Shown here in pieces: positions 3,178-56,126 of a stretch of DNA of 64,000 nucleotides. Within the stretch, counting starts at the first letter, position 1; each line of letters opens with the position of its first letter. The DNA is taken from assembly GCA_035084275.1 (NCBI GenBank), contig CM068756.1:14136001-14200000 (forward strand), in the 5' to 3' direction. Origin of the DNA: Hydrolagus colliei. Its lineage: Eukaryota. The notes under the pieces were generated by a model that made no database searches, was not told the DNA's origin, and saw only the letters and a program-made list of their open reading frames with translations. The position numbers were made by a program, and so were the translations under genes.

Positions 3178-3232
3178 ATGTTTGTGAGGAGCTCGGTTCG
3201 ATGGGCATTCATCCTGGGGATGATTTACACAG
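3178..3232 (+). CDS. Gene 1 leader exon
   Basis: ATG at 3178, 18 codons + G, hydrophobic (WAFILGMIYT), donor CAG|gtcagt. Same length and phase as the gene 2 leader. Confidence 0.7.
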
Positions 3233-6200
3233 GTCAGTCCTTCCAAATGAAGCCTTCAATAATTAGTTATTGAGAATGACTGTATTAATTAGTAATAATT
3301 CTCCAAAACGATTGATTTGAGGGTAAAGCAGGGTCTCTGTATGAATTATACAATGGTTTGTTATTTTGGCGTGACCATTGGTTCTATTCGTAGTTATTTT
3401 GAAACAATACTAATAATAAAAAAACGTTTTGATTTGATATTAGAGCCTTGTTGAGACGTCTCAACGCGCTTCACAGAATTCACTAAACTGCATTGACAGT
3501 GTTTCATAGGGAAACGGAGCAGAACATTGGTTTAAATTATTAACTGTGTCTATATTTGACGGTTTTTTATATCTATATATATATATATACTGTATGTAGA
3601 TATTTACTGATGTGATGTTGTCCATTCTCTACAGTTGTTGAGAATTCCCAGATTAAGCAAATTCCCCCCTCTCTGCAAAGTGAGAAAGGCTCTACGGTCA
3701 AGTTTTACTGCGTCTTTCCCCTCACTTCCGATCAAAATGCAATTAAGGTTCGTTGGTGGAAAGACGGAGATCGTGATTTCTTAGACGCAAAGAAAGATTC
3801 CCGAAATACCTTCACCATTGCAAGCAGGGCAGGCGCGGAGTTTCAGCTTCAGAGATTGAGGGTGAGCGATGCAGGAATGTATTACTGCAAAGTGGAGGGC
3901 GAGTACACTGGCAATGGGACAGGCTCCGAGCTCCGTGTCTCTGGTGAGTGTCAACACCAATGTGGCTTGAAAAAAAATTGTGCACGTTTAATGTATTTGT
4001 AAATATCTTCGTTTTCTTCGGTTTTATGAAATATATATTGTATTAGTTCAATTTCTATATAATGTTTATATGTTATATTTCACTCAAAATCTTCTGCTTT
4101 AGCTGTTTTCTATTATATATGTAAACATACCTCACATATTAGTATGTATATATGGTTTATATATCCTATACATATGAATTATATATGGATATATATGTGT
4201 GTATATAATGTTTATATGTATAAATTTACTTTGCAACAGTGAGTTTTCGTTGCTTCCACAACTGCACTGAAAACAATTGAATTTAATTTGCAAAACGGAT
4301 CTCTCAGTCAGTCCCATAGACACCTCACATTTGATTGCATTTAGTAGCTGTTTGTGCAAAAAAACACACGTGTCACTGAGGCTGCTGCTATTTCAGACTA
4401 TTTTCGAGTATATAAAGACTGATCTGAGCCCTACAATAAAAACAAACACGTTCAGGTGTGTGAGAACGATTGCTTACTATATCGGATTGCACAACATTGG
4501 CTATATTTCTAGTGCCCACCGCACTGTCCCATATACAACGATGTTTCGAAATCGATTCTATTTATGTGTATGAGGAGGTGGAAAGTTTTGAGAGATTATT
4601 TCAAAACCCATCGAATCTATACATCAAGAAATGCCACAATAAGCGTCAGACAAACAGCTAACCTAGTATAATCTGTGTTTAGCTTTATGTGTTAGCTTTA
4701 CCGGGAGATATGCATTGAAATTAATTTATATTTAAAACGTCTGTCTCTGAATCAATGGGAGGAGACATCATGGTTGTTATTACTCTCTCAATTTTATTTG
4801 AAATGAAATCAGGTCATTTACCCTATTATTGATTTAAATGTTTTAACTTTTCACTCAGGTCACAAATAATTTCCTTCACATCAAATAATCACATTCACTT
4901 TAGTAGAATGGTCCCCTCCTTCTGAGCTATGTTTGATGCAAAACGATTTTTAAAATTTTATTTCAAATATCACTTAAAGAATCTCCCCCATGCCCACTAC
5001 AACTAAGTTAATGGCAGACTTCAAACTACCCTGTGGATGTACTGCATGATCAGATACCACTTCCGGAGTTCGGTATTTTAACCTAAACTGAACATTTGGG
5101 ACAATACTACTAAGAATAATCCTTGCATTTGATACATCACTGTTCAACTCCAGACGATGTCTCATAAGCATTTCACAGGGTTGTATAATAATAATAATAC
5201 TAATCCTTGCAGTTGATATAGTGTCTTATCATGTTGTTGACATGTCTCAAACGCACTTCACAGGATATACTGTTAAAATGAATTGGTTGTGTGTTTTCTG
5301 AGCGAAACTGTAAATTCTGATGGCTGTGTGTTTTGCAGGTAGATGCTGTAGCCAATTTGTGCACATCAATGATCCACAATCTTTTAATATCGGCTGAAAG
5401 AAAAGGTGTTCAGAAATAGTGTACTTTATTCCAGCGCCACATTGTAACAGATATTTGCCTAACCCAAGGCTCTGGATTTCTAACAGGACAGAATCACATC
5501 CAGAATATTGGGAACTACACTATTAATAATAATCATTGCATTTAATTTCATATGAGGAGGACATCTCAAAGCACTTTGCGGGATTTATCATAAAGTGTAC
5601 TGACTGTGTCTTTCACAGGACTAGTCAATTTGTACATAGCACTATCTATCCCACATATAGCTCTGAAGCAAACACACAATTTATCTGGAGGATTATCAGA
5701 TGGAGTGGAAACTATCTTCATAATCCCTCGAAAAGCACTCTTTATTAATGGCATTCTCTACCCCAGAAGGTGTAGATGCTCAGTCATTGAACATATTAAA
5801 GACTGAAATTGACAACTTTTCAAAAGCTGAAGGGATTAAGGGATATGGGGTTAAGGGCGGGTAAATGGAATTAGGATAGAATCTTATTAAATGGCTGAGG
5901 GGGCGAATGGTCTACTCCTGCTTCCTACATTTTATATTCTTATGTTGACATTGTTGTCATCTAGGTGGTACAAGAAGTCCGAATTTCAACCCAAGCAACG
6001 AATAAACCTAAATTGAAACAGTTTGTGGTAAATTGGCTGCCGCGTTTTGCCCACAAAATACACAGTCAGGCTGACTTCACCATATATTTTGTGAAGCATT
6101 TTGAGATGGCTATTAAAATTTATTTTAAATATTTTTAAAATCACCACAGAAAAAAGGAAAATTAGGGGAATTTTTACAACAGAAGCAATTCATATCCTGA

Positions 6201-7886
6201 TTGCCTGACGCAGAGCTTCCTTTGATTCCCCTTCTTCCTTAGGTAATGACCATAACTTTATGCTAAATTGAAACTTCTAATTGTATTTCCTTAAGGATCT
6301 TAAATTCTGTTTTAGACAATATATAGTGTTGTCTTTAATGTTCAGTAATACATTACAGCTGCTGCAAGCTATTTCTTTTGACAAACATTCATTTGTTTAG
6401 TTTACACAGAATACAATTAACTTTGTTGGCACCTTGCACCTTGTTAAATGGATTGACTATATTTTCAGACTGACACATTTGCAGCCCAGTTGCACACAGC
6501 AATGTCCCATAAACAGCCATGAAACATATGAGTAATTGTATTCGGGAAGTTTGTCCAGGTCACCGGGAGATGCTCTCTCTGTTGTCGAGAAATACTTTGG
6601 GATGTTTCCAAGCTATAGGTGCTTTCAAACTTCAAGTTCATTCTTTCATAGATGAAAGGACTTTCTACCATTATCCTGACAGACAATACCCCAGAGAAAA
6701 CAAAAATATGCTACTCTTCATGTGGGCTATTGCTGTGCACAGACCAACTGCAGGATTTGTCCACAAATACCCAGTCACTACACTTTGGAGAAAAATCTGG
6801 AAATGATTGCTTTTGTGTGATAGAACATTATATTAAGTTACATTATGTGCAACTTTCGTTTCATACCGTTTATTAACTTTCTGACTCAAACTTAGTATCC
6901 ATGGAGTTATTAAATACAGTACTGCAAAGCAAATCAGCATTGTGATACCCAGTGAAATATGGTACAAAATATTTCATATTATATTAAAAATTGAAAACTC
7001 TTTTCTTGTTTGTTAACATCTTTCAAGCTCCTCCAACTGACCTGAAGATTTCCTCCACGGGGTCGTCGCTTTCTCCAACATATATGTGCACAACCACCGG
7101 GTTTTATCCTGATAACTTAAAGATGGAGTTCTTTAAAAATGACAAAAAACTAACAGCAGTAAAAGAACTGAAACAAAAGACACCAGAGGGAGACTATAAT
7201 TTTTCCAGCTCTGTGGAAGAGAAACAGCCTGTCCCGATTGGGACCGTATATTCCTGTAAGGTATCGCACTCCGCCCTCAAGAATTCACCCAAGACGGTCA
7301 CTTACACAGAAGGTAAGGGAAGCATATTATTGGAAATACTAGGGTATTTTTTGACGGTACCAAAGTACAATACTTTGATGGACTCCAGAGCATTGCTGAT
7401 ACAGACCAGCCAGAATGGCTCAGACCCTTCGGAAACAGGGATTCTTCCCATTGCAGCTGCTGTTAACACTGCAGCCCAAAGCCCTAACTCGTAGGGTTTT
7501 ACTAGATGCACAAACAGAGGGAAACTTGCCACGAATGGCATATTATTGTGTTGGTGATGGTGATTGTGTTGTTGATTAACATGATGGTGGTGATGATGTT
7601 TATTATTATAATAATAATAATTATTATTATTATTATTGAGGGTTTTAATCGGGTTAAACTCCAGCAGTCATCAAGTCTTGTCTCTTGCCAACCTGCGTTT
7701 GATCCTCTCCGGGATTCAGTACTGATTCGGTGTGATTTTTACGTATGAAAATAAATTGGCGTTTTATTTCCGTTTCAGAAAAAGAAACCGAAGACCCTTT
7801 TCCCTGGTGGATCTACGCTTGTATAAGTGCTGGAGTTCTACTTCTGCTGCTCACAATAATAATAATGCTTGCCTGTTGTTGCAGAA
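3178..7886 (+). CDS. Gene 1: VJ-C1-TM Ig-superfamily receptor (exons 3178-3232, 3635-3943, 7028-7312, 7779-7886; cytoplasmic exons uncertain)
   Basis: Four exons with AG/GT boundaries, all joining in phase 1 into one open frame: MFVRSSVRWAFILGMIYT-V-VENSQIKQIP...YYCKVEGEYTGNGTGSELRVS-A-PPTDLK...CTTTGFYPD...YSCKVSHSAL...-E-KETEDPFPWWIYACISAGVLLLLLTIIIMLACCCR. Confidence 0.85.
3635..3943 (+). CDS. Gene 1 V-set (VJ-type) domain exon, not in the ORF track
   Basis: ttctctacag| acceptor, |gtgagt donor, 309 nt phase 1-1. C-VFP, W-W-K, DAGMYYC and the G-strand GNGTGSELRV motif are all present. Confidence 0.92.
5690..5945 (+). mobile_element. CR1 LINE 3' end
   Basis: ccccagaagg-tgtagatgctcagtcattgaacat...ctactcctgct...(cttatg) tail, homologous to 62370-62580. 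Confidence 0.75.
7028..7312 (+). CDS. Gene 1 C1-set domain exon
   Basis: Inside ORF 6991-7494. CTTTGFYPD and YSCKVSHSAL C1 motifs, 285 nt phase 1-1, donor |gtaagg. Confidence 0.9.
7779..7886 (+). CDS. Gene 1 transmembrane exon
   Basis: cgtttcag| acceptor, |gtaagt donor, 108 nt. Uncharged ~22-aa hydrophobic stretch followed by CCCR. Confidence 0.88.
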
Positions 7887-10191: not shown

Positions 10192-10274
10192 AGCGAGCTA
10201 AGAGACGTAAATCGGATCACTGTGTACGTTGCTCTGGATTGAAAACTGCAAAGCCCCAATGCAAGCAAGAGGAA
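10192..10274 (+). CDS. Gene 1 candidate cytoplasmic exon (homologous to the ITIM exon of genes 3/4, frame-shifted)
   Basis: tttttcatacag| and |gtgagt. Phase 0 reads ...ITVYVALD*; the +1 frame continues LKTAKPQCKQEE (compare VAYVALDLKSSNKTPRTKQQEE in gene 4). A possible 18-nt phase 1-1 mini-exon lies at 9941-9958. Confidence 0.5.
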
Positions 10275-10425
10275 GTGAGTTGCCAGATCGCTGAGAAGCC
10301 CAAAACAAATGTGAATCAAGGAACAAAAGTGAAGAACAAAGCACCAAAAAGCCAGAAGCGCCATATGAAAAATAAGGACCCTATCCTTGAATGAATGAAT
10401 TAAGAACAGTCTTGATTAACAGACA

Positions 10426-14980: not shown

Positions 14981-15302
14981 ATAATAATCCTTGCATTTGA
15001 TATAACGCTTTTCATAATCACTTTTTATCGACGTCCCAAAGTGCTTCACAGAATATACTGTAAAGTGAATTGACTGTACGTTTGTGGGCGAAACGCGGCA
15101 GCCAATTGCGCACAGCAGCGTCCCACAAACAGTCGTGGATTGATAATGACCAATTTTTATTATTGTGTTGTTTTTGGACGGATTATTATTAGGTGTGAGG
15201 AGCAAGGAAAGTTGCCCAAGGTTTCGACCTGATCTGCCTGGATTCGAACACAGGTCTCATGCTTGTAAGGCAAGTGCTTTAAACACTGAGCTACAGCTCC
15301 AC
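14981..15302 (-). mobile_element. Full-length copy of the same SINE
   Basis: Head, core and tail all present. Confidence 0.85.
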
Positions 15303-16054
15303 ATATACTGCAATCCCAATTTCCAAAAATAAATCAGTGATTATCTGCACTACAGAAAAGCGTAAGCAATAGAAGCAAATTACTACTGGAAACGAGCACA
15401 AAGCATACAAGTGTTGCAGTGATTCCCAGGTGGATCAGATTTCGGAAATCAGATTTCTGCTTGTGGATAGAATGAGGTGTTCAGCAAATTGGACACCACA
15501 TCATGAGAAGCGATGGTAGTACATGTAAATTGCTGTCTCCCAATTTATTCCCGCCTGACCTGCCTTACTTTCGGTGGCTGAGGTTTCAGCTTCTCTGCCC
15601 CCACCCTTGCCTCCTTCGAAGCCTGTCTGAAGTCCCTCCTTTTTGACCGTGCCTTCAGCTTCCCCCACTACCTCTGTAGCTCTCCCTTATCCCAACCCTG
15701 CCACGCTCTCCATGCTTGGGTCCTGATACCTAGCTGTTCAACACCTTTGGACATATTCCTGACGTGACAGGCGATCTAGAAAAGTAATTTTGTTGTTGTT
15801 GTCTCATGCAAAATCTGTGTTTGGGGTGTTGGACAGTGCACACACTCTAATAATAATCCGTCCAAAAAAAAGCAACACAATAATACAATTGGTAATTTCA
15901 ATCCACGACTATTTGTGGGACACCACTGTGTGCAATTGGCTGTCGCGTTTCACCCATAAATATACAGTCAATTCACTTTACAGTATATTCTGTGAAGTGC
16001 TTTGAGACGACTAGAAGACGTGAAAAGTGCTATATCAACTGCAAGGATTATTAT

Positions 16055-16630: not shown

Positions 16631-17812
16631 AGATGGTAATAATAATAATACTTCGTGAAAATCCCACGTCTCATTAAATGTTGAAGTCACGAGTCACAAC
16701 TGTGTAAGCCTGATTGACTTCATCACCATAGGGATAAAAAAACAATCATTGATTCCACTTATTCCCATTATATATTGACCACTCTGGGGTGTAGATGTCC
16801 AGTTATGCTTGTTGTGATGCTGTTGATGGTGAATTAGCCTGCACACACACACACACGCACACACACACACACACTGTCTATCTCAGCCTTTGCGCATGCT
16901 ATGGAGGGAATAGAGGGCAGCATCCAACAACAGCTACAACAATTTGAATTATACACTGTGCCCCTCATGCAGGGTAGCGTCCTAAGGCACTTAAACATGC
17001 TGGAGGGAGAATATATAATGAAACCACATTTCAAAATTCATCCTGCTCAGATGTGTTTATAATGTCATTAATATTTGTACACTGAACTTTCCACTCACCA
17101 CCCAAACCCCCAATTTACAACTTAGTTGAATGATAAGCATTGTAGCAGAGTATCTGTAAATCAACTAAGTCAATTGAAGGTTTTGTCCAGTAAAATTTAA
17201 TTGTATAGCTTTGGGTTCCTGATTTGAATCCGGTCTAAAATGGGTCACTGCTGTGCACAATTGGCTGCCACATTTCATCCACAAATGTACAGTCAATTCA
17301 CTTGATTCACAGTCAAGTGCAAGGATTATTATTATTATCATGACATTACAGTTCCCCACTAAAGCATGCTACACAGAATGATCTTGACTAATAAGCACAA
17401 AGCATAAAACTGGTTCCAAAGTTAGGACAAATTGTAACGAATTTGGGAGGTATAGTCCACAATAATGAATTGCTGGGATTTGAGAAATCGTACCAGTGGA
17501 TACTGGGCATCCTCCGATAACTATTTTAAATTTGCGACACACTGAATTTTTATACAAAATGTAGTATTTAAACAGTATGGTACTAAAAAAAAAATCAAAC
17601 ATTGACTTTGAATAAAGATTTTTAAAGCAAACCTCCGATAGTGGCATTCTTGGCAGAGGTGAACGTGTTCCTGACCTATGCAAACTATTGGCATTACATT
17701 AAGCAAACATCAGTACATCAGTAAAAAGCAATTACGTCAACATCTAATATCCTTTGTCTCTTCAATCCATGTGGACAGCCGGTGGCTGACTATTTTGCTG
17801 ATTCATCGTTAC

Positions 17813-18056
17813 CTCAGTGTACAGTACATTGTTGTCATTATGTACGATTCGATTTTCTGTAGAACCGGTCAGGTCTAATGTACATCAACTTCTTGATCTG
17901 GAAGGTAATGAGTTAAGCAGTTAGTTTATTGTCTTCACAATTGGGAAATTCAAAATTATGATTGGCAACGTTTTCAAAGTTTAACATAGTTCAGTTATTA
18001 AAAATTGCACTCCATTTATTTTGGAGCCTGTTGACTCAGAAAGTTCTATATCTATC

Positions 18057-18087
<31 letters not shown>

Positions 18088-21305: not shown

Positions 21306-21419
21306 CTCCACAGTTGTTGAATTGACATTGTTTCCAAATGAAGAAGAGCAGGACAAGAAATGCAAACCCAGCCCCTCCACATCCAAATATCCACAAGGAA
21401 AGGGGAATATCGTTACTGG
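21306..21419 (-). CDS. Gene 2 transmembrane exon, not in the ORF track
   Basis: tgtcttacag| and |gtaagt. 114 nt, the same length as the gene 3/4 TM exons, with SLW..GC...AFLV...KQCQ shared. Confidence 0.85.
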
Positions 21420-34568: not shown

Positions 34569-34734
34569 ATCACCATAGTCTATGGCTGAAGCCCAGTAGT
34601 AAGTACTTGGCTAAGCTGTATCTGAAACAAAGCGTAAGAATTCCATGTTTTGGTGTTTGATTTATTTTATTCAATTCTATCGAAGATATAGATTGACCAA
34701 ATTAAACCCAACACGTTAGGTTCGATAAATGTTG

Positions 34735-34740
34735 TTTATT
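34735..34740 (-). terminator. Candidate poly(A) signal AATAAA for gene 3 (equivalent at 50673-50678 for gene 4)
   Basis: First canonical hexamer I found downstream of the stop codon in each copy. Confidence 0.4.
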
Positions 34741-34789
34741 TGAGATCTACAAAACCACTTCACAGTGTTACAATTCACAGCCTTGGATG

Positions 34790-35593: not shown

Positions 35594-35932
35594 AGAAACT
35601 TCACAGTGTTAGAAATCTGGTCCCAGATTTGTATTGGTATATTTTGTTCCAGTGATATAACAGCTTCATTGATTTTATAAACGATTATAGTTGATAGCAC
35701 AGCGACATTATCAGATTAGGATTTAACAATTTTGAAGATGAAATTGGATCGAGTTCATAAATGATGGTTAATAAGAATGGAATCGGGAAAAGGGTAAATG
35801 ATGTATTTCTGCAACTGTCAAAGCAGTGATACACCAGCAGACCAGACCAGCATTGATACACACACTGTCACTTGTCCACATTGACAGGGATCTGTGACTG
35901 ACATGCAGAGGTAATTGTCTATTATTGTGACA

Positions 35933-36097
35933 TTATGCGGCTGCTGACTCCGTGACAGTGACAGCTTTGTAGTTTCCGACATTTACCTCCGCATACTCTG
36001 AATTCTTGCCGCCAGGTTTAGCTTTTCCTGTTTTTTTGGAGCGAGGGAAATCCAGATCAGCGTAGGTCAGCTTGTCAGTGGCGGCTCCTCGCTTGGT
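35933..36097 (-). CDS. Gene 3 terminal ITIM exon
   Basis: ttgttttcag| TKRGAATDKLTYADLDFPRSKKTGKAKPGGKNSEYAEVNVGNYKAVTVTESAAA*. Confidence 0.87.
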   Translation of the reverse strand, partial: TKRGAATDKLTYADLDFPRSKKTGKAKPGGKNSEYAEVNVGNYKAVTVTESAAA

Positions 36098-41771: not shown

Positions 41772-41814
41772 GTCTGACTCTGGTTCTAATGAGCTGTAAC
41801 ACACAAACGTGGAG

Positions 41815-41895
41815 TATTTGATATAGAGTAGGCACCTGTGACACTGACTTCCTGTTTCTTTGGGTTCCTGAAATGTGGCTGGTGTGGTTGATGTG
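41815..41895 (-). promoter_or_regulatory. Candidate proximal promoter of gene 3 (Ets-type ACAGGAAGT at 41847-41855, TGTGGT Runx-type site); equivalent at 56202-56210 for gene 4
   Basis: Motifs 50-120 nt upstream of the ATG, kept in both copies. Short motifs only, no TSS data. Confidence 0.3.
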
Positions 41896-44800
41896 ATTTG
41901 AAATCCACTTCCACAATAAATTGTAAAAATACTGATTCTTCCTATTAATAGCAGAGAAAGGTTAAACAAATATATAAACATAAAACAATAGCGTTCAGCA
42001 TGACTATCGAGTCAGTGGTGCTTTCTCCAACCTGAAATGTTGTTTTAAACATGAAATCCTGTAGCTTGGGCAAGCTTCCTTACTACACATGCCTAATAAT
42101 AATCGGTCCAAAAAAAATACTATAACAAATATTGGTCATTTTCAATCCACGACTGTTTGTGGCACACTGCTGTGCGCAATTGGCTGCTGCGTTTCGCCCA
42201 CAAAGATTGAGTCAATTCACTTTACAGTATATTCTGTGAAGCGCTTTTAGATGTCGATAAGATGTGAAAAGCGCTTTGTGAAATGTGCAAGGATTATTAT
42301 TGTAACTCCGCCTGCAGTCAATAGTGTCAGAAACAAGCCGAACTGGTGGAATATTTCTGCTGCTAGCTCTCTCTGTCCCTTATTGATAGAAATTAACCTT
42401 TCTCTCTAAAGCGCCCACCCACCCTTTATGATACCACATTACCATCCCATTTTAACATTACTGTTCGTATCCAACATCCTGGCCACTCAACATTGCTCCC
42501 ATCTGTTTCTCCACTAAGCCCTAGAAATCCAGATTGTACCCATCCTGGTCCACCATCGTTACTTGACGACTTCTCTTCCCTCTCCCATCTCTACGATGTA
42601 CTGCAGAGTATCCAAGAACTGTATTCTTGACCCCCTTCTTTTTTCACCCCACACGCCAAATAATTAACCATCCCACCAAAAGCTACAGTTGGTCATTGAA
42701 ATGCACGACTGTTTGTGGGACATTGTTGTGCGCAATTGGCTGCTGTGTTACACCCACAAATGTATAGTCAATTCATTTTACTGTATATTCTGTGAAGCGC
42801 TGTGAGACATCCAGAAGACATGGAAAGTGCAATGATTATTATTGCACTCTCTCTCTTTGTGATACTATCCACAGACCAGCAATTAACTTTCACATTGATG
42901 TGAACGAAAGACAACTCAACTCAACCCCACTGTTGATTCAGGATCTATTTCATTGTCAAGACCTAGATGACCCCAGACTTCCTCTAAATTACTATTGATG
43001 AATCCCATCCTCCTTGTCTTTTGCAAATATTTCCTTTCTCCTGGAATATACTGTAAAGTGAATTGACTGTATATATGTGGGTGAAACGAGGCATCCAATT
43101 GCGCACATCAAGTGTTCCCACAAACAGTCGTGGATTGAAATGACAAATTTATTATTTTTGTGTTTTTGAGGGACCATTATTAGAAGTGTGGAGCAAGGAA
43201 ACTTAATCAAGGTTTCACCCTTTACAGTATATAAGGCAATATTTTGCACCACTCATACAAAGTATCAACTATGTTAGGCAACTCAGAACAACAACTTGTT
43301 CAGTATTAAAAAAAAATCCTAGTGCAGGAAGAGGGAAAACATAAAATGTGAAACATAAAAATAAATGCTACTTGATATTTGATAAGCTTCTTCAGCGCCT
43401 TTTCTTCCCGCAACCAGAATGGAATGTAGAACTTCATTCGAGAAGAACGGCCCGAGAATGCCATGAAGTCACTGCGCAATCACAAGGACCAGGTAGATTC
43501 CCAGTTCATCAAATCAGAGATTTAAAATCAGAGCATATAGACTCAAAATCTACATGCAACTCCAATATTGTCAATGGAAATTAAATTTTTTAGTTGTGAT
43601 CTATCCTTGCCACCCAATTTATTATTTTTATTAAGCTCCTCGTGCACGTCCATTCATGGGAGAACAAAGCTTGTCGTCCTCCTCAAACCAAACCGAAGGG
43701 ATAGAGTAACAATAACATCACTGAGCAGGACCAGGATATTATTGTAAAGGAAAAGTCCAAGCATAGAACTCTAAATGACATAGATTTACAGACCCAATTA
43801 AATTTGCAGGTAACATCAATTGATAGATAAACCAATGGGATGCACTAAGAGGAAACACAAATCTCCACAAATCCTCCACCCAAACAGGGTGTTGTGTTAT
43901 TTGTGGCACTATATAAATATATTCAGAGTCCTGTAGCTCAGTAGTTAGAGCACTTGCCTTACAGGTGAGTGACCTGAGTATCCTTACTCCACACATCTAA
44001 TAATAATCGCTCAAAACAATAATAAATTGACCATTTCAATCCATGACAGTTTGTCGGACACTGTTGTGGGCAATTGGTTGCTGCATTTTGCCCAAATAGA
44101 TACAGTCAGTTCACTTTGCTGTATAATCTATGAAGTGCTTTGAGACGTCTAGAAGATTTAAGAAGCGCCATATCAAATGCAAAGATAATTATTATTATTT
44201 TCATTGTTACATTACTCTGGTCAGACGGCACCTTGAGTAATGTAATCACTGCGACATAACGGGGCTTCCCAATGCAGTGGAAAACAATGAGGATGATGCC
44301 CCCATTAGGGGAATATGCCATGAGAGGTGTTTAAAATTGTAAATTGGATTGAAAAAGTCACCCCAGATTAATAGTTTAGGTTGTAGTAAAACGGCAGAAT
44401 AAGAGGACATAGGTTTTGAGTTGCAAGGGCAATATCAGAATAGATAGCAGAATAGATTTCTTCACAGCAACTAAAATAAGAATAGCTGGAATAGTTTGGG
44501 AGGAAGTTTGGCTGAGGCCACATCAAACACACACAGCTACAACACCACCTCATGCAGTAAGAATGCTGCCGTTCCATAAGAAATGCAATATTGTGCCCAG
44601 TTTTTACAGCCATTTTGCTACAATAGGCACCTTGATGGAAACATTAATAATCCATGCTCTATCTATAATCTGAGAGCATGAGACTCTTGCAGTGGAATTA
44701 TCCTTTGACATTTATAAATGCAGCAGAACGATTGGGGTTTTAACACTTATTTGTTTCATGTTGGGTACATTGTTAGTAGATACCCAAAATGCTCAATGCC

Positions 44801-46244: not shown

Positions 46245-46309
46245 AATGTAGCCCTGGATTGAGCAATAGGCCACTAACTTGCCATTTAATGCTGATCAAT
46301 GGTAAGCAC

Positions 46310-47118
46310 TAGGGTCCGGTGATATATCGATATATCGCTAAAACCCGATATAATTTTCATATCGATACGCCGATATAGGCATTTCAAAAATATGGATATA
46401 TCGAAAAATCAATATATCGAATTAAAAAATCGGAATACGTGCACACTGAACTACAAGACCCAGAATGCTCATCTCTATACACAATGCACAGACCGAGGTG
46501 CAAAGCCACCATATTGTATTCATAGTCCTCAAATACAATATACAGATATGCAAGGGTTGGGGGGGGGGGGGTGGGGGGAGGGGAGAGAGACAGCTGGGGG
46601 GGGGGGAGAGAGACGGCTGGGGGGAGGGAGGGGGAGTGAGACGGCTGGGGTGGGGGAGGGGAGAGAGACGGCTGGTGGGGGCGTGGAGGGAGAGAAAGAC
46701 GGCGGCGGGGGTGGAGGAGGAGAAAGACGGCTGGGGGGGGTGGGGGGGAGAGTGTGGGAGAGAGGGATGGCGGCGGGGGGCGAGAGGAGAGAGGGACGGC
46801 AGCGGTGGGGGTGGTGGGGGGAGAGACGGGGTGGATGTGATAATATACAGATAGATAGAGATTGGGGGGATGTGAGAGAGGAGAGAGACACAGAGACACA
46901 GACAGAAAAACACAGAGATGGAGAGAGTGGGTGTGAGAGACACAGAGAGAGAAAGATATTTACCTCCTGAGGAGATAGGCCTGAATGCGCGCGCACCCCG
47001 ATTGCGCTGCGCACGCATGCGCAGTACGAAAACCCCAAAATTATCGATATTTCAGTATATCTCGATATGAGCCCGTCGATGTATCTAAATCGGAAAATTT
47101 CCATATCAACGGACCCTA
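46310..47118. mobile_element. Non-autonomous hAT-type DNA transposon (MITE), 809 bp
   Basis: TIRs TAGGGTCCGGTGATAT / ATATCAACGGACCCTA, 8-bp TSD GTAAGCAC (46302-46309, 47119-47126), subterminal (A)TATCGAT / CCGATAT repeats. Confidence 0.88.
46555..46960 (+). repeat. G-rich low-complexity tandem repeat inside the hAT MITE
   Basis: Repeating GGGG(G)AGGGAGAGAGACGGCT-like unit. Confidence 0.85.
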
Positions 47119-50100
47119 GTAAGCACATGAGCAACCAAGAAAGTTGAATTGGAGAAAAGAAGAAGCAGGGGTTATTTTCTAGGTGTTTTCCGAATCACTA
47201 AGGATATAAATAAACTGTCAGCAAATAATATGTTTGATGAAGGAAAGGAATAATGCAGTGGAAATTGATGTTTATCCCTCTAATAACAATCATACATTCT
47301 GCTCGTAGTGTTACTTTGACTGAAAAATTACCAGTAACTAACAGAAAAAAGGTGCAGATTGTTCCAGTAAAATAACATCCCCCTCCCATGAATCTGATCA
47401 GTTTTGACTCTGATAACAACGCTGCACAAATGTGTAGCCACTTTACATGTTTCTGTGTCTTTGACTTCCTGTCTTGGAGGTTTTCAGGAAATTGAATTCA
47501 TGTTGTGAGCGTAATTCGTAATTACATGTAATCATTAAAGCTACGTCAACCTTCTGAATCAGAAGTGAGAGGGCGACCAAATGAGCCAGCCTGATACGCA
47601 ATGCATAATTCATGTTGCAGTCATCTGCAGCCTGGAAGTTCTTTGTTTCCTTGAACAGGTTTGTTTCACACAGAATGATCAATACCATTTATTAACTTCA
47701 AGTGAACCCATGATTACATTTGTACAATTGTGGCAATATATTCAGACGATCAGTTGATGCCAATAACTACAGTAGGGAAGCCAGTAGCTTGAAAACCAGA
47801 TTCTTGATCGTAAAATTAGGAGACAAAATATGTCCCAGATTATAATTTTCACTGAGAGCTGTAAACATGGTACAATTTGTCAAATAATGTGGTAAATGTG
47901 GGTAAAACAAGGCAGCGAATTGCGCACAACAATTTCCCACAAATAGTCATTGGTTGAATGTATATCTATAGAATGTTAAGTCTCAATCATTTAGTCCAAT
48001 TATTTTCCTATGTGCCATTCACACACAGAGTGAATAAATATTCCAGATACATTGCAATAATATATTGTTGCTACCATACAGAGGTATAATTTAATTTTTA
48101 ATGACTGTTGGTATGTAGCTTGCAGTATCAGGACTAAATGTTGCTTTACTTTACCACCGCTGAATACTTACTGGTACAAATGTGGAAGTGGAAGTGATGT
48201 GGGTGTCTGTCACACAGTAACTGCTGCCTCGGGGATCAATATGAATCCTGCTCATTGTGTGTTTTCATGCAATGATTATTCCTACTTGAATCACAATGAA
48301 TAGTTTGCTCAGCTGAGGTGGCATCTGAGGTACTCTATCTATCAGCGCCAGAGTATAACCATGTAACCACAATCTAAGTTCCTATTCAGCATCAAAATAA
48401 ATGACTCATATGCTGTTTCATTAATCGATTCCACCTTTTGACCACTGGGTGAATTTCTTTCTCTCGCTGAATAATTCTTGTGCTGCTTTTTAAATTTTTT
48501 TATAGTACTGTACTAATGACTGGGTACATTTGGGGGTTGGTGATTTATGGTCTAAATAAATCAATATTGATTTAATATTGAATTGAAATATTAAACTCTA
48601 ACGAAGAATAAAGCACACCGATTAATGCATAATAATAATAATCATTGCATTTGATGTGGCGCTTCTAATGTCTTCTAGATAACTCAAAATGTTTCACAGA
48701 ACTCAGTGGAAAGTGAATTGAGTATGTATTTTGTGGGCGTAACGCAGCAGCCAATTGTGCACAGGAGAGTCCCACAAACTAAGGAAACTTCCCCAAAGTT
48801 TTACCCTGACCTGCTTGGAATTGAACCCTCTTGCAAGGCGAGTGCTCTAACCAATAAGCTACAGGATTCCACTATATTTAATGATAAACCCTGGAATCAG
48901 CCCTGAAATACTCTTATCCCTAGTTGCCAGCGGTTTGACAGCACAGCCCCATCAGTGGCAGCATCATTGAGGATTTACAGAGATTTACAAAGGGAACATT
49001 GGTCTGTGAAGGGCAATCACCATTTGTATCATTGAATTTGAGTCTTGATTTCAGTCTTGAGACATTGTATGCAACTGACTCAACACATCAATGTGAAAAC
49101 CTTTTAAGCAACTGCCTGGAATGTGTGACAATATAAATAGGAGCACAACGATCCTGCTTAAGTGTTCATGAAATTCAATTGAATTTAAACCAGTGAATAG
49201 ATACAAAAGCATGTTGATTAAACACTTTAAAGAAAAAAACAATCTTTGCTTTGATTTCATCAAATGGAACGTTGCAGTGTGACATAGAAACAGATGCAAT
49301 GAGGCACATAAACTTTACTGATGGCCAATAAAAGGCTTTGTGGTGTGAGAGTGTAACTGTGATACACACACACACATCTATATATGTAGATGGAGATATA
49401 TGCGTATACGTGTGAAATTGCTACACCTAAACAGACATACGCTCCATCAGTTCATGTGTTGCATAAATGGCCTGTGAGTGTGGACAATCGTGTTCTTTAT
49501 TTAATCAGGTACAGCAGAGACAAGGGTAAAAAATAAACGTTGCTTCATTTCAGCTTCATTTTGCACATACTTGCATAACGCCCACACAATAACCTTTACA
49601 TTGTGGCAGATGAATTGCATCACATTTTCTTAGATAACTGTTAAGGTTATTTACATCAGTTTACTTCTAATTTGAGTCTCTGTTATTGTCATCCAATGAG
49701 CCAACATAATACATTATAGTGAAACAAAACATTACCCTCACTGTACACACTGAACTGATGTACATTTACTTCCAGCTGCATGTAATAATAATACTTGCAT
49801 TTGATATCACACTTTTCATGTCTTCTAGATGTCTCAATGCACTTCACAGTATATACTGTAACTGTATATTTGTGGGTGAAACATGGCAGTCAAATGCTCA
49901 CAACAGTGTTACTATTAGACATGTGGAGTAAGAAAACTTGACCAAGGTTTCACCCTGCCTGGAATTGAACCAAGGTCTCTTTCTTGCAAGGCGAATGCTC
50001 TAACCACTGAGCTACAGGACTTTTAAATGTAACAGATTGAGAATTGTTTTTAGAATTGATCACATGCTCTACATACAAATTTTGTAGTCATCAAACCGTA

Positions 50101-50298
50101 TGTTTGTTGTTGAAATTGGCTACTCAGGCAATGGATGGAAGATAGCTGGAATCAACTAAAGGAGGCTGCTTTTTGTCCAAGAATTCAACTGATGACCAAT
50201 CCTTGAAATGTTTGGATTTCCCAGAGAGAGAGAGAGAAACATTACTGAACCTTAAACAATCATTAGAATCAAACACAAAATACTACAGATGCTGGAAA

Positions 50299-50508
50299 TC
50301 TGAAACAAAAACAGAAGTTACTGGGAAAACTCAGCAGGTCGGGCAGCATCCATGGAGAAAGGAAAGTGAGTCAACGTTTTGGGTCCACGACGCTTCATCA
50401 GAACTCAAACGAAGGGTCGTGGACCCAAAACGTTGACTCACTTTCCTTTCTCCATGGATGCTGCCTGACCTGCTGAGTTTTCCCAGCAACTTTTGTTTTT
50501 GTTTCAGA
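50299..50508. repeat. ~210-bp palindromic Penelope-type element with hammerhead-like core (copy 2)
   Basis: Same palindrome. Minus strand has CTGATGA-agcgtcgtggaccc-AAAAC. Confidence 0.75.
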
Positions 50509-51029
50509 ATCACCATCATCTATGGCTGAAGCCCAGTAGTAAGTACTTGGCTAAGCTGTATCTTAAACAAAGCGTAAGAATTCCATTATGGTGTTTAATT
50601 TATTTTATTCAATTCTATCGTAGATATAGATTGACCAAATCAAACCCAACACATTAGGTTCGATAAATGTTGTTTATTTGAGATCTACAAAACAGTGTTA
50701 GAAACTATTGTAAACTGGTCCCAGATTTGTATTGGTATATTTTGTTCCAGTGATATAACAGCTTCATTGATTTTATAAACGATTATAGTTGATAGGACAG
50801 CGACATTATCAGATTAGGATTGAACAATTTTGAAGGTGAAATTGGATCGAGTTCATAAATGATGGTTAATAAGAATGGAATCGGGAAAAGGGTAAATGAT
50901 GTATTTCTGCACTGTCAAAGCAGTGATAAACTAGCAGACCAGACCAGCATTGATACACACACTGTCACTTGTCTACATTGACAGGGATCTGTGACTGACA
51001 TGCAGAGGTAATTGTCTATTATTGTGACA

Positions 51030-52042
51030 TTATGCGGCTCCTGACTCCGTGACAGTGACAGCTTTGTAGTTTCCGACATTTACCTCCGCATACTCTGAAT
51101 TCTTGCCGCCAGGTTTAGCTTTTCCTGTTTTTTTGGAGCGAGGGAAATCCAGATCAGCGTAGGTCAGCTTGTCAGTGGCGGCTCCTCGCTTGGTCTGAAA
51201 ACAACAATGTTTGGGATTGTCTTTTTGTTGGTTCCATGTATAGATTTACATAGAATGGTACGGAAACTGAGCAGCCGCTGTTTATACTTCACATTTCCTC
51301 CATTCTTACTTATTTTCTTCTATAAATCTCTATTCTTTTCTCCTCGTCTCCGCAACAAGGTTTATGTTATATTATTCCAAACTCATCACCCCATGGCCAA
51401 TTGGTGAATGTATTTCAAACTGAGATATGTAACTGTAGATTTAAGGCTCTAGATCTTAGCGATGAGCTGACAGCTGCTTTGGTTGGTGCAGATCAGTTAA
51501 TCCTGGAATTCCCGATTGCTCTATGGGAATTTGAAATCTCAGGATGGCTGGGTCAGTATACACATGATCCTCGTTAATTTATTTGCTGAATTGTTAATTC
51601 ATATCTAAAGATACAATCTTAGAATATTATGGCCCAGAAAGTAAGTTTGCTCATCGGACACGTGCTGTTAATTTGAAAAAATTATGTACAGAGTCCCATT
51701 TACCTGCCTTTTCTCCAACACTCCTTAAAATTCATCTGTTTTTACATATCCCCATTATCTTCAGATGAAGGAATTATGTTGTTTCAACCCAGAAAGGCTG
51801 AAGATATTCAAAAACCAAATGCAGAATACAAATGAGGTATTTGAAGATTGGAGAAGGGGACAAAATCATAACGATCAAACCAATGAAGCCTATTTACCAA
51901 ACCCGTTCAACATTTTTTACATGTTGTTTACCTGGGCGTATACTGTCCTCTCCTCCTGTTGTTTAGTTCTTGGAGTTTTATTGGAACTTTTTAAATCCAA
52001 TGCTACATAAGCCACGTTGTCACCCACTGCTCCCTCCCCCGT
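51030..52042 (-). CDS. Gene 4 ITIM exons (52042-51932 and 51194-51030)
   Basis: Near-identical to the gene 3 ITIM exons; 3 amino-acid differences by hand. Confidence 0.85.
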
Positions 52043-55000
52043 CTGTAAAACAAAGTATAGAGTTAAATGGTTGTTCAGTTTCCTTCCTAGGTCTGTGCTC
52101 TTTGACTATGGTATTGATTAAGTAGGGATTTTAGGGGAAACAACGGCTACTGTTGAGTTCAAATATTAATGGCACATAACATCCAGTAAGTAGATCGAGA
52201 TCTCTCCAGGAGCAGAGAAAATTATGTTTCCAATTGATACTTTGCCATCCACCAAGATGAAAATATGTTGCAGAACTGATTAGATGAATTCAACAAGAAT
52301 TCTCACTTCAAGTATTATCTCTTAAAATATCCTGGGATTAGCCCTGTTGCTAGGCACAGGCCTGACACTGAAGGATTACTCAAAAGGTAAATTACTTGTT
52401 TATTGGAGTAACAATTTAATCCTTTAAAGGGGAATAAATAGGTCTATTTATTCCTATTAAGGAAAGGTTGAAAGCTTTGCGTTCATTGTCCAATTAAACG
52501 TAAACTCTGTCTTCTTGGGGTGGGATGAGATTATTGTCTGTCTTGTCTTAAACTCTGTCTTGTTGGGGTGGGATGGTATGCTGGCGAATGATAATCAGAA
52601 TAACTTGGCGATACACTTCATCATGGTTTATGGGACCATATTATGCGCAAATTGGTTGTAGCAAATAGAGTCGCTACAAAGACAAGGATTAGAAGCATTT
52701 TAAGATGATTGGAATTATAGGATCCACATTGATAATGAGTAAATTGCTCCATTGGTCACCCAAACTCTTTGGTGAAAAACTTATAATAGTAATAATAATC
52801 CTTGCTTTTGATATAGCGCTTTTCACATCTTCTCGGCATCTCAAAGCGCTTACGAATTTTTAAAAACATACCCGTTCTTCAAGATTGCCCGATTGAGTCA
52901 GGTTTCCCTTTGATCCTAAATGTGAATCAAATTTACTGAATTAAATATTTACCCAATTTTAATGTTAACAATAAAATCATGTAATTATCCTACATTTTGG
53001 GATGAGTGAAATCCAAATATTCTCCTGCATTATTTACCCTCCACCTGAATCTGCATGTCACTCATACTTTCTTAAATCCTTAACACTGTGGGACTCTTTC
53101 CGTTGAATATTTAAAAGGTGAAACTTGGCGATGGCTAACCACTATTCCTCAATTCTTAAGAAACTTGGTTGTTTCCTGCAAACTGAGCCTTGGTTTCTCT
53201 CCTGGGACTCTCAATAATAAAAATATATTTTTAATGTACCAATTTCAATGTAATACATTGCTGAATTCCGTTAAACAATAACAAATAACATGTGTAAAGC
53301 GCCTTTCACGTCGGGAGGTTGTTTACTGATAAACATACACCTGGCGCTAATCCCTGCATTTGTTTGAGACCATTCGTCAGTACAGTTACTTACAAATGCA
53401 CATAATTCATCCAATTATAAGGCAGTTGCAATATTGTATATTGAATCAGATTTCTGACATTGGATGTTGGAAAAGGAGCAATTCTGGGAAACTAACATTC
53501 ACCTTGTGAAATTGTTACAGGAATGAATCTGTTGTAATAACTACAAGTAATTGATGTTGTATAATTACAGCGTCACAGAACTCTACTATCATGGAAATAA
53601 GAATCAAGTCACTTTGTCTCTTTGCTAATAACCATTGGTGCTTTCAATGGTTTTATATCAAGGTGTAATGTTTACAATTAATTGCAATGAAATCAGAATT
53701 TTCTTACTGTTTTTCTTCTTTAATTGGCATTGCTTCCCAATTATGATCGAAATCACCAGAAATGCGACCACACCCGCAGCACATCCACCCCATAGTGAAT
53801 AACGGGTTGGATTTTCAATCCCTGGGGAAATAGTATTCACTGAGATGAGACTGTACATTGTGTAGGGGAATGCTTTATAAATTTGGTAGAATAGATATGT
53901 TATGCAAGTCATTTATGATTTATACCTTGCAGTGATTTCGAGTAAGTATTAAGCACGGTAAATGGTTTAAATATGGTCTAATCTTAATCCGTGTTTATTG
54001 AAAGAGGAATAAAAATTAGAAGGAGACCATCATTGAAAACATTTTGATATTGACGTAGGGTTAGACAGGTGTTAGACAGATCAACATTTGTTCTCGCTTA
54101 TTTTTATTATTGCTCTTAAATCGATCACACTGAGGGCGACACACAGAATACACATGAAGCGGAATATCGATCTTCAGAGGAACCCTCACAAAATACAATC
54201 TATAAATTATAGAGTGAGACAACTGGACATAGTGGCATCTGATTGCAGCGATGAAACATGCTGACTAGCTTTGAATAAAAGGAGGAACATGGTGGGATGG
54301 AAAGACATTTGATGTCTTTCCATCCCACCAAACTTCAGCTCAAGACACGTGTCCTGAGCTGAAGTTTTGAAAATCATTCAGTTTTACGATGTGTTGATAA
54401 TATCCACAATCGATAAGTAGATAATATCGGTTTAGTTTTAATGAAATGTTTGATGATTCACATCAAATGTTCCACATTCGAACAGTGTAATATATTTGAT
54501 CAACATCTTGCACAACCCCCTCATCACTAATCTCAACACATTTGTCTCCTATCAACTCTGGCATCGCTTCCTATCCCCACAGGTCTCCCGGGAGAGCAAG
54601 TCACATTCCATCCCTCAAGTCACGGGCAGGAGCTGCTGAACATTGACTGTTCCTCGGGTCTCTATCCTCAGCCTCTGCCCTTCACTATCTAGATGTTCCC
54701 ACTTGGCGACAAATCACTTCAGAGGATTCAATGAAATGCGTTGTACAAATACAACTTTGTTGTTGATGTTGTTTACGAATCAATGCGGCTAAACATCCCT
54801 ATGAGAATTGAATTAACAACAGTTGGGTTTTTAAAACTCTTTTAGAATCTTACCTGCTTTAGGTTTTGAGATGGTGTAGGTGGCAATAGCTGAATTCTTG
54901 AGGGTGATGTGAGACACCAGACAGGTATAAACAGATACGCTCTGGACAGACTGTGTGTCTTCAATAGAGCTAGAGACCATATAGAGTTCCCATGAGTCCT

Positions 55001-56126
55001 GCTTTTCTTTGGTTACTGTCTCTTCCACCTTTATTCCTGATGTTGGTGTAATTTTGTTCTCATCTTTATACCATATGAGGGTGAAATCCTTTGGGTAAAA
55101 TGCGGTAGTTTCACACACAATTGTCCGATGCTTAGTTGAATTCCTAGAGAAGATCCTCAGTGGAGTTGGGGGAACTGTAGAACAGATAATGGAGGAAAAT
55201 CATATTAATTTTGATGAATCAGCGGGAGAAACTTTATTTTAATTCTTTTGTTTGCAATCTCCCGATTCCTGAGTGCAAATGGAGGTTTATTTAGATTCAC
55301 AAATATCCCTCTCACAGCAGCAGAAGCTTCCTCCTGCTGTAATTACCCTTCGGTTTTTATCAATTAATGTTGATGCGTAATCGTTGTCTTACATATTATT
55401 ACTATTATTGTTATTGTGACTAAGATTATCAGGCGGAATTGATCACTGTGAACTCTCGATCAGAGGAGACACAGGATTCCTGACAGGTGTGAGAACACTG
55501 TCAGGATATGGGATCAAACTTGACATTGGGACTAGGAATTCACACAGTTGATGTGGAAACATTTGCTGCAATGCACACTCACCCTGCACAGTTAAACGTG
55601 ATCCAGGTCCTGTTCCAATTACTGATCCCTGACGGATCACTGAGCAGCGATAGACTCCAGAGTCCTGGAAACTCACATTCAGGAACTGGAAGAAGCCGCT
55701 TCCTTTGCCTATCACACCAAATGTTTTCCTGCTGTCCGCCTGTGTGTCCAAGTAGCCGTCCTCACCCTCCTTCTCCCACTTCACCTCCTGTCCTGAACCG
55801 TGTTGAGAGGAGGGAAACATACAGAGGAGAGTCACGTTCATCCCTCCGATGAGCGTCACACGTTCGGGGCTTTGATATACTTTCACTGAAGAATCATCAG
55901 CAACTGTCAGAGAATAGAGTCAAACACTGATTTCACAGATAATACGCCGTGGACAAAGCAAGCGAGTAAAGAGAGTAAAAATTGAGTTAGTATACTGTAT
56001 ATGATAATAACACATGGAAACAGGCTTGTAGATATTTCATAGAAGAAATGAGTTATATAATAATGATAAAATACCTGTTGAAATAATATGTAAGACAGAC
56101 AGGTACAGAAACACAACACTCCCCAT
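51030..56126 (-). CDS. Gene 4: paralog of gene 3, VJ-C1-TM inhibitory receptor, 375 aa (exons 56126-56075, 55903-55583, 55174-54854, 53821-53708, 52915-52872, 52042-51932, 51194-51030)
   Basis: Same seven exon lengths and splice sites as gene 3, with an open frame. Tail motifs VAYVAL, TVYAQ, LTYADL, SEYAEV. Confidence 0.88.
53708..53821 (-). CDS. Gene 4 TM exon
   Basis: GIENPTRYSLWGGCAAGVVAFLVISIIIGKQCQLKKKN, 114 nt. Confidence 0.9.
54854..55174 (-). CDS. Gene 4 C1-set exon
   Basis: ORF 54831-55118. CETTAFYPKDFTLIWYK...YTCLVSH. Confidence 0.92.
55583..55903 (-). CDS. Gene 4 V-set (VJ-type) exon
   Basis: ORF 55443-55886. NVTLLCMFP, VKWEK, DSGVYRC, GTGPGSRLTV; |gtgagt. Confidence 0.92.

Follow-up and report, generated by a model that had tools for sequence, protein, structure and literature searches.

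A Cluster of Germline-Joined VJ-C1 Receptor Genes in the Chimaera Hydrolagus colliei, with a Conserved Member and Putatively Inhibitory Duplicates

Introduction

The question raised by this locus is whether four neighbouring genes of a cartilaginous fish, each joining a variable-type (V) immunoglobulin (Ig) domain that already carries its J-like strand to a single C1-set domain, are relics of the ancestry of rearranging antigen receptors, members of a known innate receptor family such as SIRP or NKp30, or a group of their own. The genes (g1 to g4) lie in a 64,000-nucleotide stretch of the Hydrolagus colliei genome (assembly GCA_035084275.1, contig CM068756.1, forward-strand positions 14,136,001 to 14,200,000), hereafter the window, whose first letter is position 1. 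Non-rearranging VJ and VJ-C1 genes are comparative material for what the RAG transposon invaded, and the same material bears on the origin of inhibitory and activating families such as SIRP and NKp30.

A first-pass annotation, made from the letters alone, had described the cluster as an expanded family combining an NKp30-like V domain, one C1 domain and a SIRP-like tail in an antigen-receptor-like architecture. We consider it likely that the locus is an OGFOD1-proximal cluster of type I receptors with a germline VJ domain, one C1 domain, a transmembrane (TM) segment and variable tails, in which g1 is conserved, g3 and g4 are inhibitory and g2 has lost its tail. The outcome is the correction of an attractive over-interpretation rather than the finding of a new kind of system.

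Results

Architecture of the Cluster

A six-frame regular-expression scan of the window, which is AT-rich vertebrate DNA with many retroelement fragments and no N, returned exactly four V-domain ends (Y.C…G.G[TS].L), and the same kind of scan returned four true C1 signatures (Y[TS]C.VSH). Gene models were built by reading the flanks around these matches, and the cytoplasmic exons were located by tblastn with the tails of homologous proteins followed by inspection of the matches. The four genes are neighbours, with g1 on the plus strand and g2, g3 and g4 on the minus strand (Table 1). Their ATGs are at 3178, 29616, 41771 and 56126, respectively, and the outermost two are the ends of the span in which the cluster had been placed. 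The leader, V, C1 and TM exons proposed earlier were recovered in all four genes, with sizes of 52–55, 309–321, 285–321 and 108–114 nt; all of them end in phase 1, and all introns are GT-AG. Beyond this set there is one cytoplasmic exon in g1 and there are three each in g3 and g4. The remark that most key exons escape an open reading frame (ORF) finder holds for the leader, TM and tail exons but not for V and C1, which are seen at a threshold of at least 90 aa.

Pfam assigns a V-set and a C1-set domain to 4/4 genes. The C1-set scores (PF07654) of 37.8–54.2 bits, with E-values from 2e-9 to 2e-14, lie above the gathering cut-off of 21 bits and accompany the FYP…W…C.V.H signature. Each gene has a single C1 exon between V and TM, and tblastn found no further C1 in the window. 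None of the four TM segments has a Lys or Arg inside, and no MHC (major histocompatibility complex) gene was found within the 64 kb.

The V exon of each gene contains its J-like G strand (GNGTGSEL, NGTGTSL, GTGPGSSL, GTGPGSRL), as had been reported: the G-strand motif comes after the F strand (Y.C), and a consensus donor, G/GTGAGT or G/GTAAGT (the slash marking the exon end), lies 4–5 codons further on. The strict heptamer-spacer-nonamer pattern of a recombination signal sequence (RSS) has no match in the window. A relaxed scan gave 26 weak sites vs. about 10 expected in shuffles, none of which abuts the 3' end of any V exon; the sole relaxed site no more than 300 bp from one (a 5/7 plus 7/9 match) is in g3, within its leader intron and on the other strand. 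The arrangement of a rearranging antigen receptor, with an RSS-flanked V and a separate J, is thus not what is found here, since the J motif sits inside the V exon. These scans confirm an architecture of germline-joined VJ plus one C1 without rearrangement signals. Genes g1 to g4 would never rearrange, and their specificity would be set in the germline.

The Conserved Member g1

The ORF of g1 is complete at 319 aa and ends in a basic, Cys-rich tail (…CCCRKRAKRRKSDHCVRCSGLKTAKPQ…). The model aligns end to end with the Callorhinchus milii protein P0195, with 215/319 residues identical, and conservation extends over the ectodomain, the juxtamembrane Cys cluster and the basic tail. P0195 carries the curated-type accessions NP_001279892.1 and AFK11468.1; accessions of the NP_ and AFK types usually come from sequenced transcripts, so the splice pattern of g1 is indirectly supported. 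A PWWIY motif is invariant among the g1-type orthologues, which also have a basic C-terminus. With this in mind, g1 would stand for a lineage that is old and evolves slowly, its 1:1 orthologues being found in chimaera, sharks and rays, and we infer that it may be anchored by palmitoylation or in lipid rafts, or else may serve as a counter-structure.

Recent Duplication and Tails of g3 and g4

The ORFs of g3 and g4 are likewise complete, at 375 aa each, with tail exons of 44, 111 and 165 nt. The latter two encode pairs of immunoreceptor tyrosine-based inhibitory and switch motifs (ITIM/ITSM) and look like duplicates of each other; homologues elsewhere in the family have up to three such pairs. 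The TM and tail of g3 align with the Callorhinchus RefSeq XP model P0013. The SIRP-like tail claimed for the whole cluster therefore applies to g3 and g4 (VAYVxL, TVYAQT, LTYADL, SEYAEV) and fails for g1, which has no tyrosine motif, and for g2, whose ITIM exon has decayed. In these two receptors the V domain would bind a ligand and the tail tyrosines would be phosphorylated, whereupon the tails would attract SHP-1/SHP-2, phosphatases with tandem SH2 domains, and lower activation in the manner of SIRP-alpha. From the motifs we infer that g3 and g4 are inhibitory receptors of the SHP-1/SHP-2-recruiting kind.

Self-comparison of the window identifies 31577–42066 and 47645–56420 as tandem copies at 83–97.6% nucleotide identity, and g3 and g4 are thus young duplicates. 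The two copies are 83–88% identical around the V and leader exons, and identity climbs to 97.6% across the tail exons, which taken one by one are 97–100% identical between the two genes. A retroelement insertion (34789–35593), 95% identical to 58425–59229, interrupts one tandem copy. By per-exon Nei-Gojobori estimates for this one pair, dN/dS is 1.04 in the VJ exon and 0.25 in C1; the V exon diverges much faster than the other exons, which is what a domain in contact with a ligand would show under shifting selection, and C1 is by this measure under purifying selection.

At the V-C1 junction, g3 has Cys124 (41237–41245; …SLIVC/VPPTP) where g4 has Gln (55583–55591), a possible difference in covalent dimerisation between the young duplicates. 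A junctional Cys as in g3 is also found in several Callorhinchus paralogues and in many relatives, which suggests that part of the family may form disulfide-linked dimers. Between g4 and g3, 5.5 kb upstream of g3 and beside a G/C-rich low-complexity block, lies a truncated V exon, probably left over from another copy of the gene.

Apparent Loss of the g2 Tail

In g2 the TM exon stands 4.8 kb past the C1 exon, across repeat insertions. A tblastn search of the window with homologue tails found no intact tail exon for this gene; there is a relic alone, at about 17.8 kb. On this model g2 would have kept its ectodomain and TM while losing the ITIM exon, and it may be a tail-less or decoy form, or a pseudogene in the making.

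The Family in Cartilaginous Fish

The queries used to find relatives were g2, g3 and an alignment of the g1 type in word-indexed searches, and the V profile in an exhaustive HMMER search; the V-C1-TM proteins that these returned come from cartilaginous fish only. They are found in the chimaera Callorhinchus, in the sharks Heterodontus, Heptranchias, Chiloscyllium, Hemiscyllium, Rhincodon, Stegostoma, Scyliorhinus, Mustelus, Carcharodon and Cetorhinus, and in the rays Pristis, Hypanus, Hemitrygon and Mobula. An expanded family, as first proposed, is borne out by the dozens of members in these animals and by a Callorhinchus cluster of at least 0.45 Mb. The best non-chondrichthyan matches of the V profile are reptile receptors of turtles and a viper (P0026, P0033, P0041, P0051, P0095, P0106 and P0116; locus L007), which have 3–6 tandem VJ-type domains (…GNGTGTQVTI) and ITIM tails (EVTYADLNF … VVYTEV) and are automatically named NCAM2, FCRL5, titin-like or otk-like. 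A Mobula birostris protein (P0162) has a family VJ domain joined straight to TM and an ITIM tail with no C1, so loss of C1 is possible in the wider group.

In the ectodomain tree there are two clades, each with an SH-aLRT support of 98. Clade A holds g1 with Callorhinchus P0195 (support 100) and their shark and ray orthologues. Clade B is the expanding and mostly ITIM-bearing branch, in which g2 pairs with Callorhinchus P0001, whose model stops after C1, and g3 and g4 pair together before joining Callorhinchus P0012. Identity of g1–g4 to the Callorhinchus orthologues is 67–78%.

The suspicion of poor annotation was justified. The family is already predicted in all annotated genomes of sharks, rays and chimaeras, and its automatic RefSeq names contradict each other and mislead: "tapasin-related protein-like," "immunoglobulin lambda-1 light chain-like," "NCR3 ligand 1-like" (B7H6-like), "SHPS-1-like," "SIRP-alpha-like," "SIRP beta/gamma-like," "M1-specific TCR beta chain-like" and "uncharacterized." The novelty of the family, which the first-pass annotation had made conditional on finding no described family with annotated 1:1 orthologues, is half lost: 1:1 orthologues of g1, g2 and g3/g4 exist in Callorhinchus, and Kinlein 2021 and Janes 2023 ("NCR3H") might already give the family a name.

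Synteny

Callorhinchus scaffold MU249845.1 carries, in this order, an OGFOD1-like gene, the g1 orthologue (+), the g2 orthologue (−) and the g3/g4 orthologues (−), as in the window for g1 to g4; the OGFOD1-like protein has 551 aa with 2OG-Fe(II) oxygenase and Ofd1_CTDD domains. In the sawfish, too, the g1 orthologue follows an OGFOD1-like gene, at 44.86 Mb on a 53.95-Mb chromosome. The window would thus be the OGFOD1-proximal end of a chondrichthyan multigene cluster. Within 10 kb of the turtle and horn-shark loci no neighbour genes were found.

Linkage to the MHC, which had been put forward for checking, did not emerge. The sawfish MHC is chromosome 34, where the gene list ends at 19.8 Mb, and three "NCR3-like" genes lie there between DDAH2 and AIF1; in the white shark the MHC (chr19) has five genes labelled NCR3 between AIF1 and DDAH2 (Verissimo et al., 2023, supplementary tables, PMC10751288). 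The sawfish g1 orthologue is off chromosome 34, which holds its own NCR3-like genes, and adjoins OGFOD1, so in the sawfish, at least, the family is distinct from the NCR3 genes linked to the MHC. A placement of the white-shark member P0007 in MHC class III was considered and is unproven: its position, 103.77 Mb on CM029971.1, would fall among unlabelled chr19 genes in the table of PMC10751288 if the two accessions are equivalent, and a second member on the same contig, LOC121279610, lies far outside the chr19 range.

Affinity to SIRP

The closest overall resemblance of the cluster is to SIRP-alpha, in the order VJ plus C1, in four tyrosine motifs and in the fold, for which SIRP-alpha is the best global match. 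The AlphaFold2 (AF2) model of the g1 V-C1 ectodomain (predicted local distance difference test, pLDDT, 94.3; predicted template modelling score, pTM, 0.82) gave its best global superposition in Foldseek on SIRP-alpha 2wng (query TM-score, TMq, 0.71; root-mean-square deviation 4.7 Å); Ig light chains gave the lowest E-values with poor superposition (TM-score about 0.45). For the local hidden Markov model (HMM) comparisons, the human NKp30 ectodomain sequence was verified against PDB 3pv6_B and that of human SIRP-alpha against 2wng; scores against the other reference sequences in the panel, including the Ig domains and PD-L1, are leads only. The family C1 HMM scored Ig-lambda C at 48 bits, Ig-kappa C at 46 and SIRP-alpha d3 at 45.5, the last with up to 34% identity. 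In the C1 tree, in which human SIRP-alpha is the sole SIRP, the family is monophyletic (SH-aLRT 91) with SIRP d2/d3 as the nearest outgroup, without support.

These likenesses are what speaks for g1–g4 being true SIRP orthologues or co-orthologues of cartilaginous fish, together with the spacing and flanks of the two motif pairs in g3 and g4 (LTYADLDF / SEYAEV), whose likeness to those of the human SIRP-alpha tail is a lead only, and with the many RefSeq models automatically named SHPS-1-like. Such orthology nevertheless seems rather unlikely. The genes have the single VJ exon and the C1 of a SIRP but one C1 and not two, and the tail with four tyrosines in two ITIM pairs is present in g3 and g4 only, such pairs being found in many unrelated receptors. 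With the family V HMM, SIRP-alpha d1 scored 22 bits, below NKp30 and PD-L1, and in the V tree it groups with a Polypterus protein and is not adjacent to the family. No link of the locus to the SIRP region was found in Callorhinchus or the sawfish, where the conserved neighbour is OGFOD1; in human, OGFOD1 is at 16q13 and the SIRP locus at 20p13. SIRP family membership is therefore not established, given the single C1, a V domain that is not close to SIRP d1 and the different neighbour. That g3 and g4 would work like SIRP-alpha is a reasonable functional analogy.

The PDB profile searches with V and C1, and an exhaustive representative V search, were swamped by multi-Ig proteins with summed domain scores, in which NKp30 and SIRP could not be ranked.

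A second reading is that the OGFOD1-linked VJ-C1 cluster is a distinct, not yet named lineage predating the holocephalan/elasmobranch split, with one conserved g1-type founder and a birth-and-death ITIM branch, and that it is the stock of SIRP-type inhibitory receptors, which have VJ-C1-C1 and two ITIM pairs. If true, a living outgroup could allow a single tree to order the SIRP, NKp30-type and antigen-receptor V(J)-C1 genes. We think this doubtful. The family is already in public annotation under misleading names, and its architecture is of a known kind (SIRP, PRARP, UrIg, shark NCR3); an undescribed lineage is a residual reading.

Affinity to NKp30

The NKp30-like V domain named in the first-pass annotation stands as a likeness of the F-G motif, and fails as kinship. 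The family motif YYC[KR]VEGEYTGNGTG.L.V resembles human CRVEVLGLGVGTGNGTRLVV, and with the g1-type V HMM NKp30 ranks top in a small panel (33 bits, vs. 29 for PD-L1 V and at most 18 for the rest). The NCBI name of one sawfish isoform of the g1 orthologue, which has the V domain only, is "NCR3-like." These points would fit a derivation of g1–g4 from a primordial shark-type NKp30 (NCR3) to which a C1 was added, a descent that we judge quite improbable. By BLASTP, human NKp30 matches g1 at 27% identity (37 bits, 15% gaps), whereas it matches the three VJ domains of horn-shark P0079 at 34–40% identity (57–77 bits); P0079 lies on a different contig, and in the V tree NKp30 groups with it (SH-aLRT 86), the g1–g4 family forming its own clade. 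Since sharks have much closer NKp30-type genes elsewhere, g1–g4 are not privileged NKp30 relatives.

The remaining comparisons agree with this. With the whole-family V HMM, PD-L1 V (39 bits) beats NKp30 (34), followed by Ig-kappa V (24) and SIRP d1 (22). For the V domain taken alone, the AF2 model (pLDDT 91.9) matched generic V-set domains (nanobody, CD79b, PD-1, NCAM, PD-L1) in Foldseek with no family signal, and NKp30 was absent from the top 50 PDB matches. A C1 domain is present, a V closest to NKp30 and an MHC class III location were not found, and the TM has no basic residue; mammalian NKp30 has a basic TM residue for adaptor pairing. The sawfish g1 orthologue, finally, lies off the MHC chromosome. 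True shark NKp30-type genes are a different, VJ-only set, and MHC-linked nurse-shark NCR3 genes (MT914154–MT914161; Kinlein et al. 2021) have reportedly been described.

The horn-shark gene model P0079/P0170 (locus L008; Heterodontus francisci CM071064.1, 31.45–31.49 Mb) has three tandem VJ domains, no C1 and one TM; it is either a multi-VJ NKp30-type receptor or an annotation-pipeline fusion of tandem NCR3 genes.

Affinity to Antigen Receptors

The unsplit VJ exon followed by C1 follows the domain order of Ig light and T-cell receptor (TCR) chains, and one reading takes the cluster for a survivor of the pre-RAG precursor of antigen receptors, of the UrIg/UrIg2 or PRARP kind. The low Foldseek E-values of Ig light chains point the same way, as does the score of the C1 HMM against the UrIg2 structure 9dmx (98 bits, summed over three domains); the PDB search with the C1 profile matched Ig C, UrIg2 and SIRP C1. 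A further point in favour is that the junctional Cys of g3 and many relatives could form disulfide-linked dimers. We nonetheless hold such a relic to be very improbable, as nothing marks the cluster as ancestral rather than derived. The architecture is common to SIRP and many non-antigen receptors, the leader structure is ordinary for Ig-superfamily (IgSF) receptors, the family does not group with Ig V in the V tree (a small panel), and no linkage to MHC or Ig/TCR loci was found at the Callorhinchus and sawfish loci.

That g1–g4 are merely decaying, functionless pseudogenes is hardly credible: the frameshifted g2 ITIM exon, the repeat-filled introns, the truncated V relic at 47.2–47.3 kb and the Callorhinchus g2 orthologue model ending after C1 would fit decay, but in g1, g3 and g4 the reading frames are complete and no canonical Ig residue or splice site is missing, C1 has a dN/dS of 0.25, and g1 has been kept since the holocephalan/elasmobranch split, its Callorhinchus orthologue bearing NP_/AFK accessions.

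Features of the Window

The exons, together with the repeats and low-complexity sequence noted in the window, are listed in Table 1. The SINE-like (short interspersed) element of about 310 bp has at least 7 copies, at 77–87% identity, across the introns and spacers of the cluster.

Table 1. Exons of g1–g4 and other features of the window (RT, reverse transcriptase; LINE, long interspersed element).
Feature	Position	Strand	Description
g1 exon 1	3178–3232	+	Leader (MFVRSSVRWAFILGMIYT); phase-1 GT donor; aligns with Callorhinchus P0195
g1 exon 2	3635–3943	+	VJ domain, ending ...YYCKVEGEYTGNGTGSELRVS then G/GTGAGT; AF2 pLDDT 92–94
g1 exon 3	7028–7312	+	C1-set (…FYPDNLKMEFFKND…YSCKVSH…); PF07654 E 1.5e-10
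g1 exon 4	7779–7886	+	Stalk and TM (…DPFPWWIYACISAGVLLLLLTIIIMLACCCR); no charged TM residue; CCC juxtamembrane
g1 exon 5	10192–10394	+	Lys/Arg-rich cytoplasmic tail, CVRCS motif, stop; no Tyr motifs
g2 exon 1	29562–29616	−	Leader (MILKRIVFLYLVILAIGP)
g2 exon 2	29164–29478	−	VJ domain (…YYCGVRCWERGMTNGTGTSLVIH)
g2 exon 3	26206–26517	−	C1-set; E 1.9e-14
g2 exon 4	21306–21419	−	TM (…SLWIFGCGGAGFAFLVLLFFIWKQCQFNNCG)
g2 ITIM-pair exon relic	17798–17881	−	Stop followed by CTLDLTGSTENRIVHNDNNVLYTEV; first tyrosine codon lost to frameshift/stop
g3 exon 1	41720–41771	−	Leader (MGSVVFLYLSVLHIIST)
g3 exon 2	41237–41557	−	VJ domain (…YHCTVIRQGSVIGTGPGSSLIVC); extra Cys at V-C1 junction
g3 exon 3	39804–40124	−	C1-set
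g3 exon 4	38687–38800	−	TM
g3 exon 5	37851–37894	−	44-nt cytoplasmic exon, phase 1 to 0
g3 exon 6	36838–36948	−	ITIM/ITSM pair 1 (VAYVTL … TVYAQT); 79% identical to Callorhinchus tail
g3 exon 7	35933–36097	−	ITIM/ITSM pair 2 (LTYADL … SEYAEV) and stop
g4 exon 1	56075–56126	−	Leader
g4 exon 2	55583–55903	−	VJ domain (…YRCSVIRQGSVIGTGPGSRLTVQ)
g4 exon 3	54854–55174	−	C1-set
g4 exon 4	53708–53821	−	TM
g4 exon 5	52872–52915	−	44-nt cytoplasmic exon
g4 exon 6	51932–52042	−	ITIM/ITSM pair 1 (VAYVAL … TVYAQT)
g4 exon 7	51030–51194	−	ITIM/ITSM pair 2 (LTYADL … SEYAEV) and stop
Truncated V-exon relic	47234–47338	−	…VKVTLRAECMIVIRGININFHCIIPF…; E 8e-4 to g3 V
Low-complexity block	46380–47135		GC-rich, purine/pyrimidine-skewed; long Gly/Arg/Glu-rich and Pro/Ser-rich ORFs on both strands; not a gene
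Retroelement debris	57431–61983
gag-protease-RT ORF	59112–61100	−	Intact-looking, 662 aa
RT/RNase H fragment	57431–57898	−	Further fragment
LINE-type RT ORF	61216–61983	+	Matches repeats in sawfish locus L003
SINE-like copies	1787–2089, 14981–15304, 24999–25313, 27728–28050, 32517–32821, 33727–34026, 56411–56723

Discussion

Taken together, the gene models, the trees and the neighbouring gene in Callorhinchus and sawfish point to g1–g4 as germline-encoded innate receptors of the paired type. Several considerations weigh against this interpretation. Expression, ligand binding and phosphatase recruitment are predictions from the gene models. ITIM/ITSM pairs are short motifs that arise convergently, and a dN/dS near 1 from a single pair of genes does not tell positive selection apart from relaxed selection. 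For g2, an intact 3' end may have escaped detection. The activating partner that a "paired receptor" family would have is also not evident in the window, as there is no charged TM residue.

What the locus adds is a clean and complete chimaera example of such genes, with intact models (g1, g3 and g4), OGFOD1 as the conserved neighbour and young duplicates in the process of diverging. One member, g1, is orthologous over about 400 million years of chondrichthyan evolution. The RefSeq names under which the family is filed (tapasin-related, Ig lambda, B7H6-like, SHPS-1-like) are unreliable.

Comparison with Known Receptor Systems

Among known systems, the SIRP family (SIRP-alpha, also SHPS-1 or PTPNS1) is, like the cluster, non-rearranging, with one exon for V and its J-like G strand and a C1 after it. 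Both encode type I membrane proteins, the tails of g3 and g4 match SIRP-alpha in having two ITIM/ITSM pairs with four tyrosines, and the family C1 HMM gives SIRP d3 as good a score as Ig light-chain C. SIRP differs in having two C1 domains instead of one, and the cluster differs from it in the OGFOD1 neighbour and in the lack of an ITIM tail in g1 and g2. NKp30/NCR3 likewise has a germline VJ exon with a similar F-G strand motif, whereas g1–g4 have a C1, no basic TM residue and the OGFOD1 neighbour.

In UrIg and UrIg2 the C domains are numerous and the leader is split, and the genes show linkage to the MHC or the Ig/TCR complex (Flajnik et al., 2023, 2025; PMC12227049). Like the present genes, they are non-rearranging VJ domains followed by C1-type domains in cartilaginous fish and are automatically annotated as Ig light chain, but in g1–g4 there is a single C1, the tails are of the receptor type and the locus is linked to OGFOD1. 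PRARP (Fu et al., 2019, J Immunol 202:1992, as cited in PMC10751288) and "NCR3H" (Janes et al., 2023, as cited in PMC11999971) are reportedly non-rearranging VJ-type IgSF genes as well, kept in non-mammalian vertebrates. Ig light and TCR chains, finally, share the V(J)-C1 order and give the lowest Foldseek E-values and the highest C1 HMM scores; unlike them, g1–g4 are without RSS or separate J and carry TM and signalling tails in the same gene.

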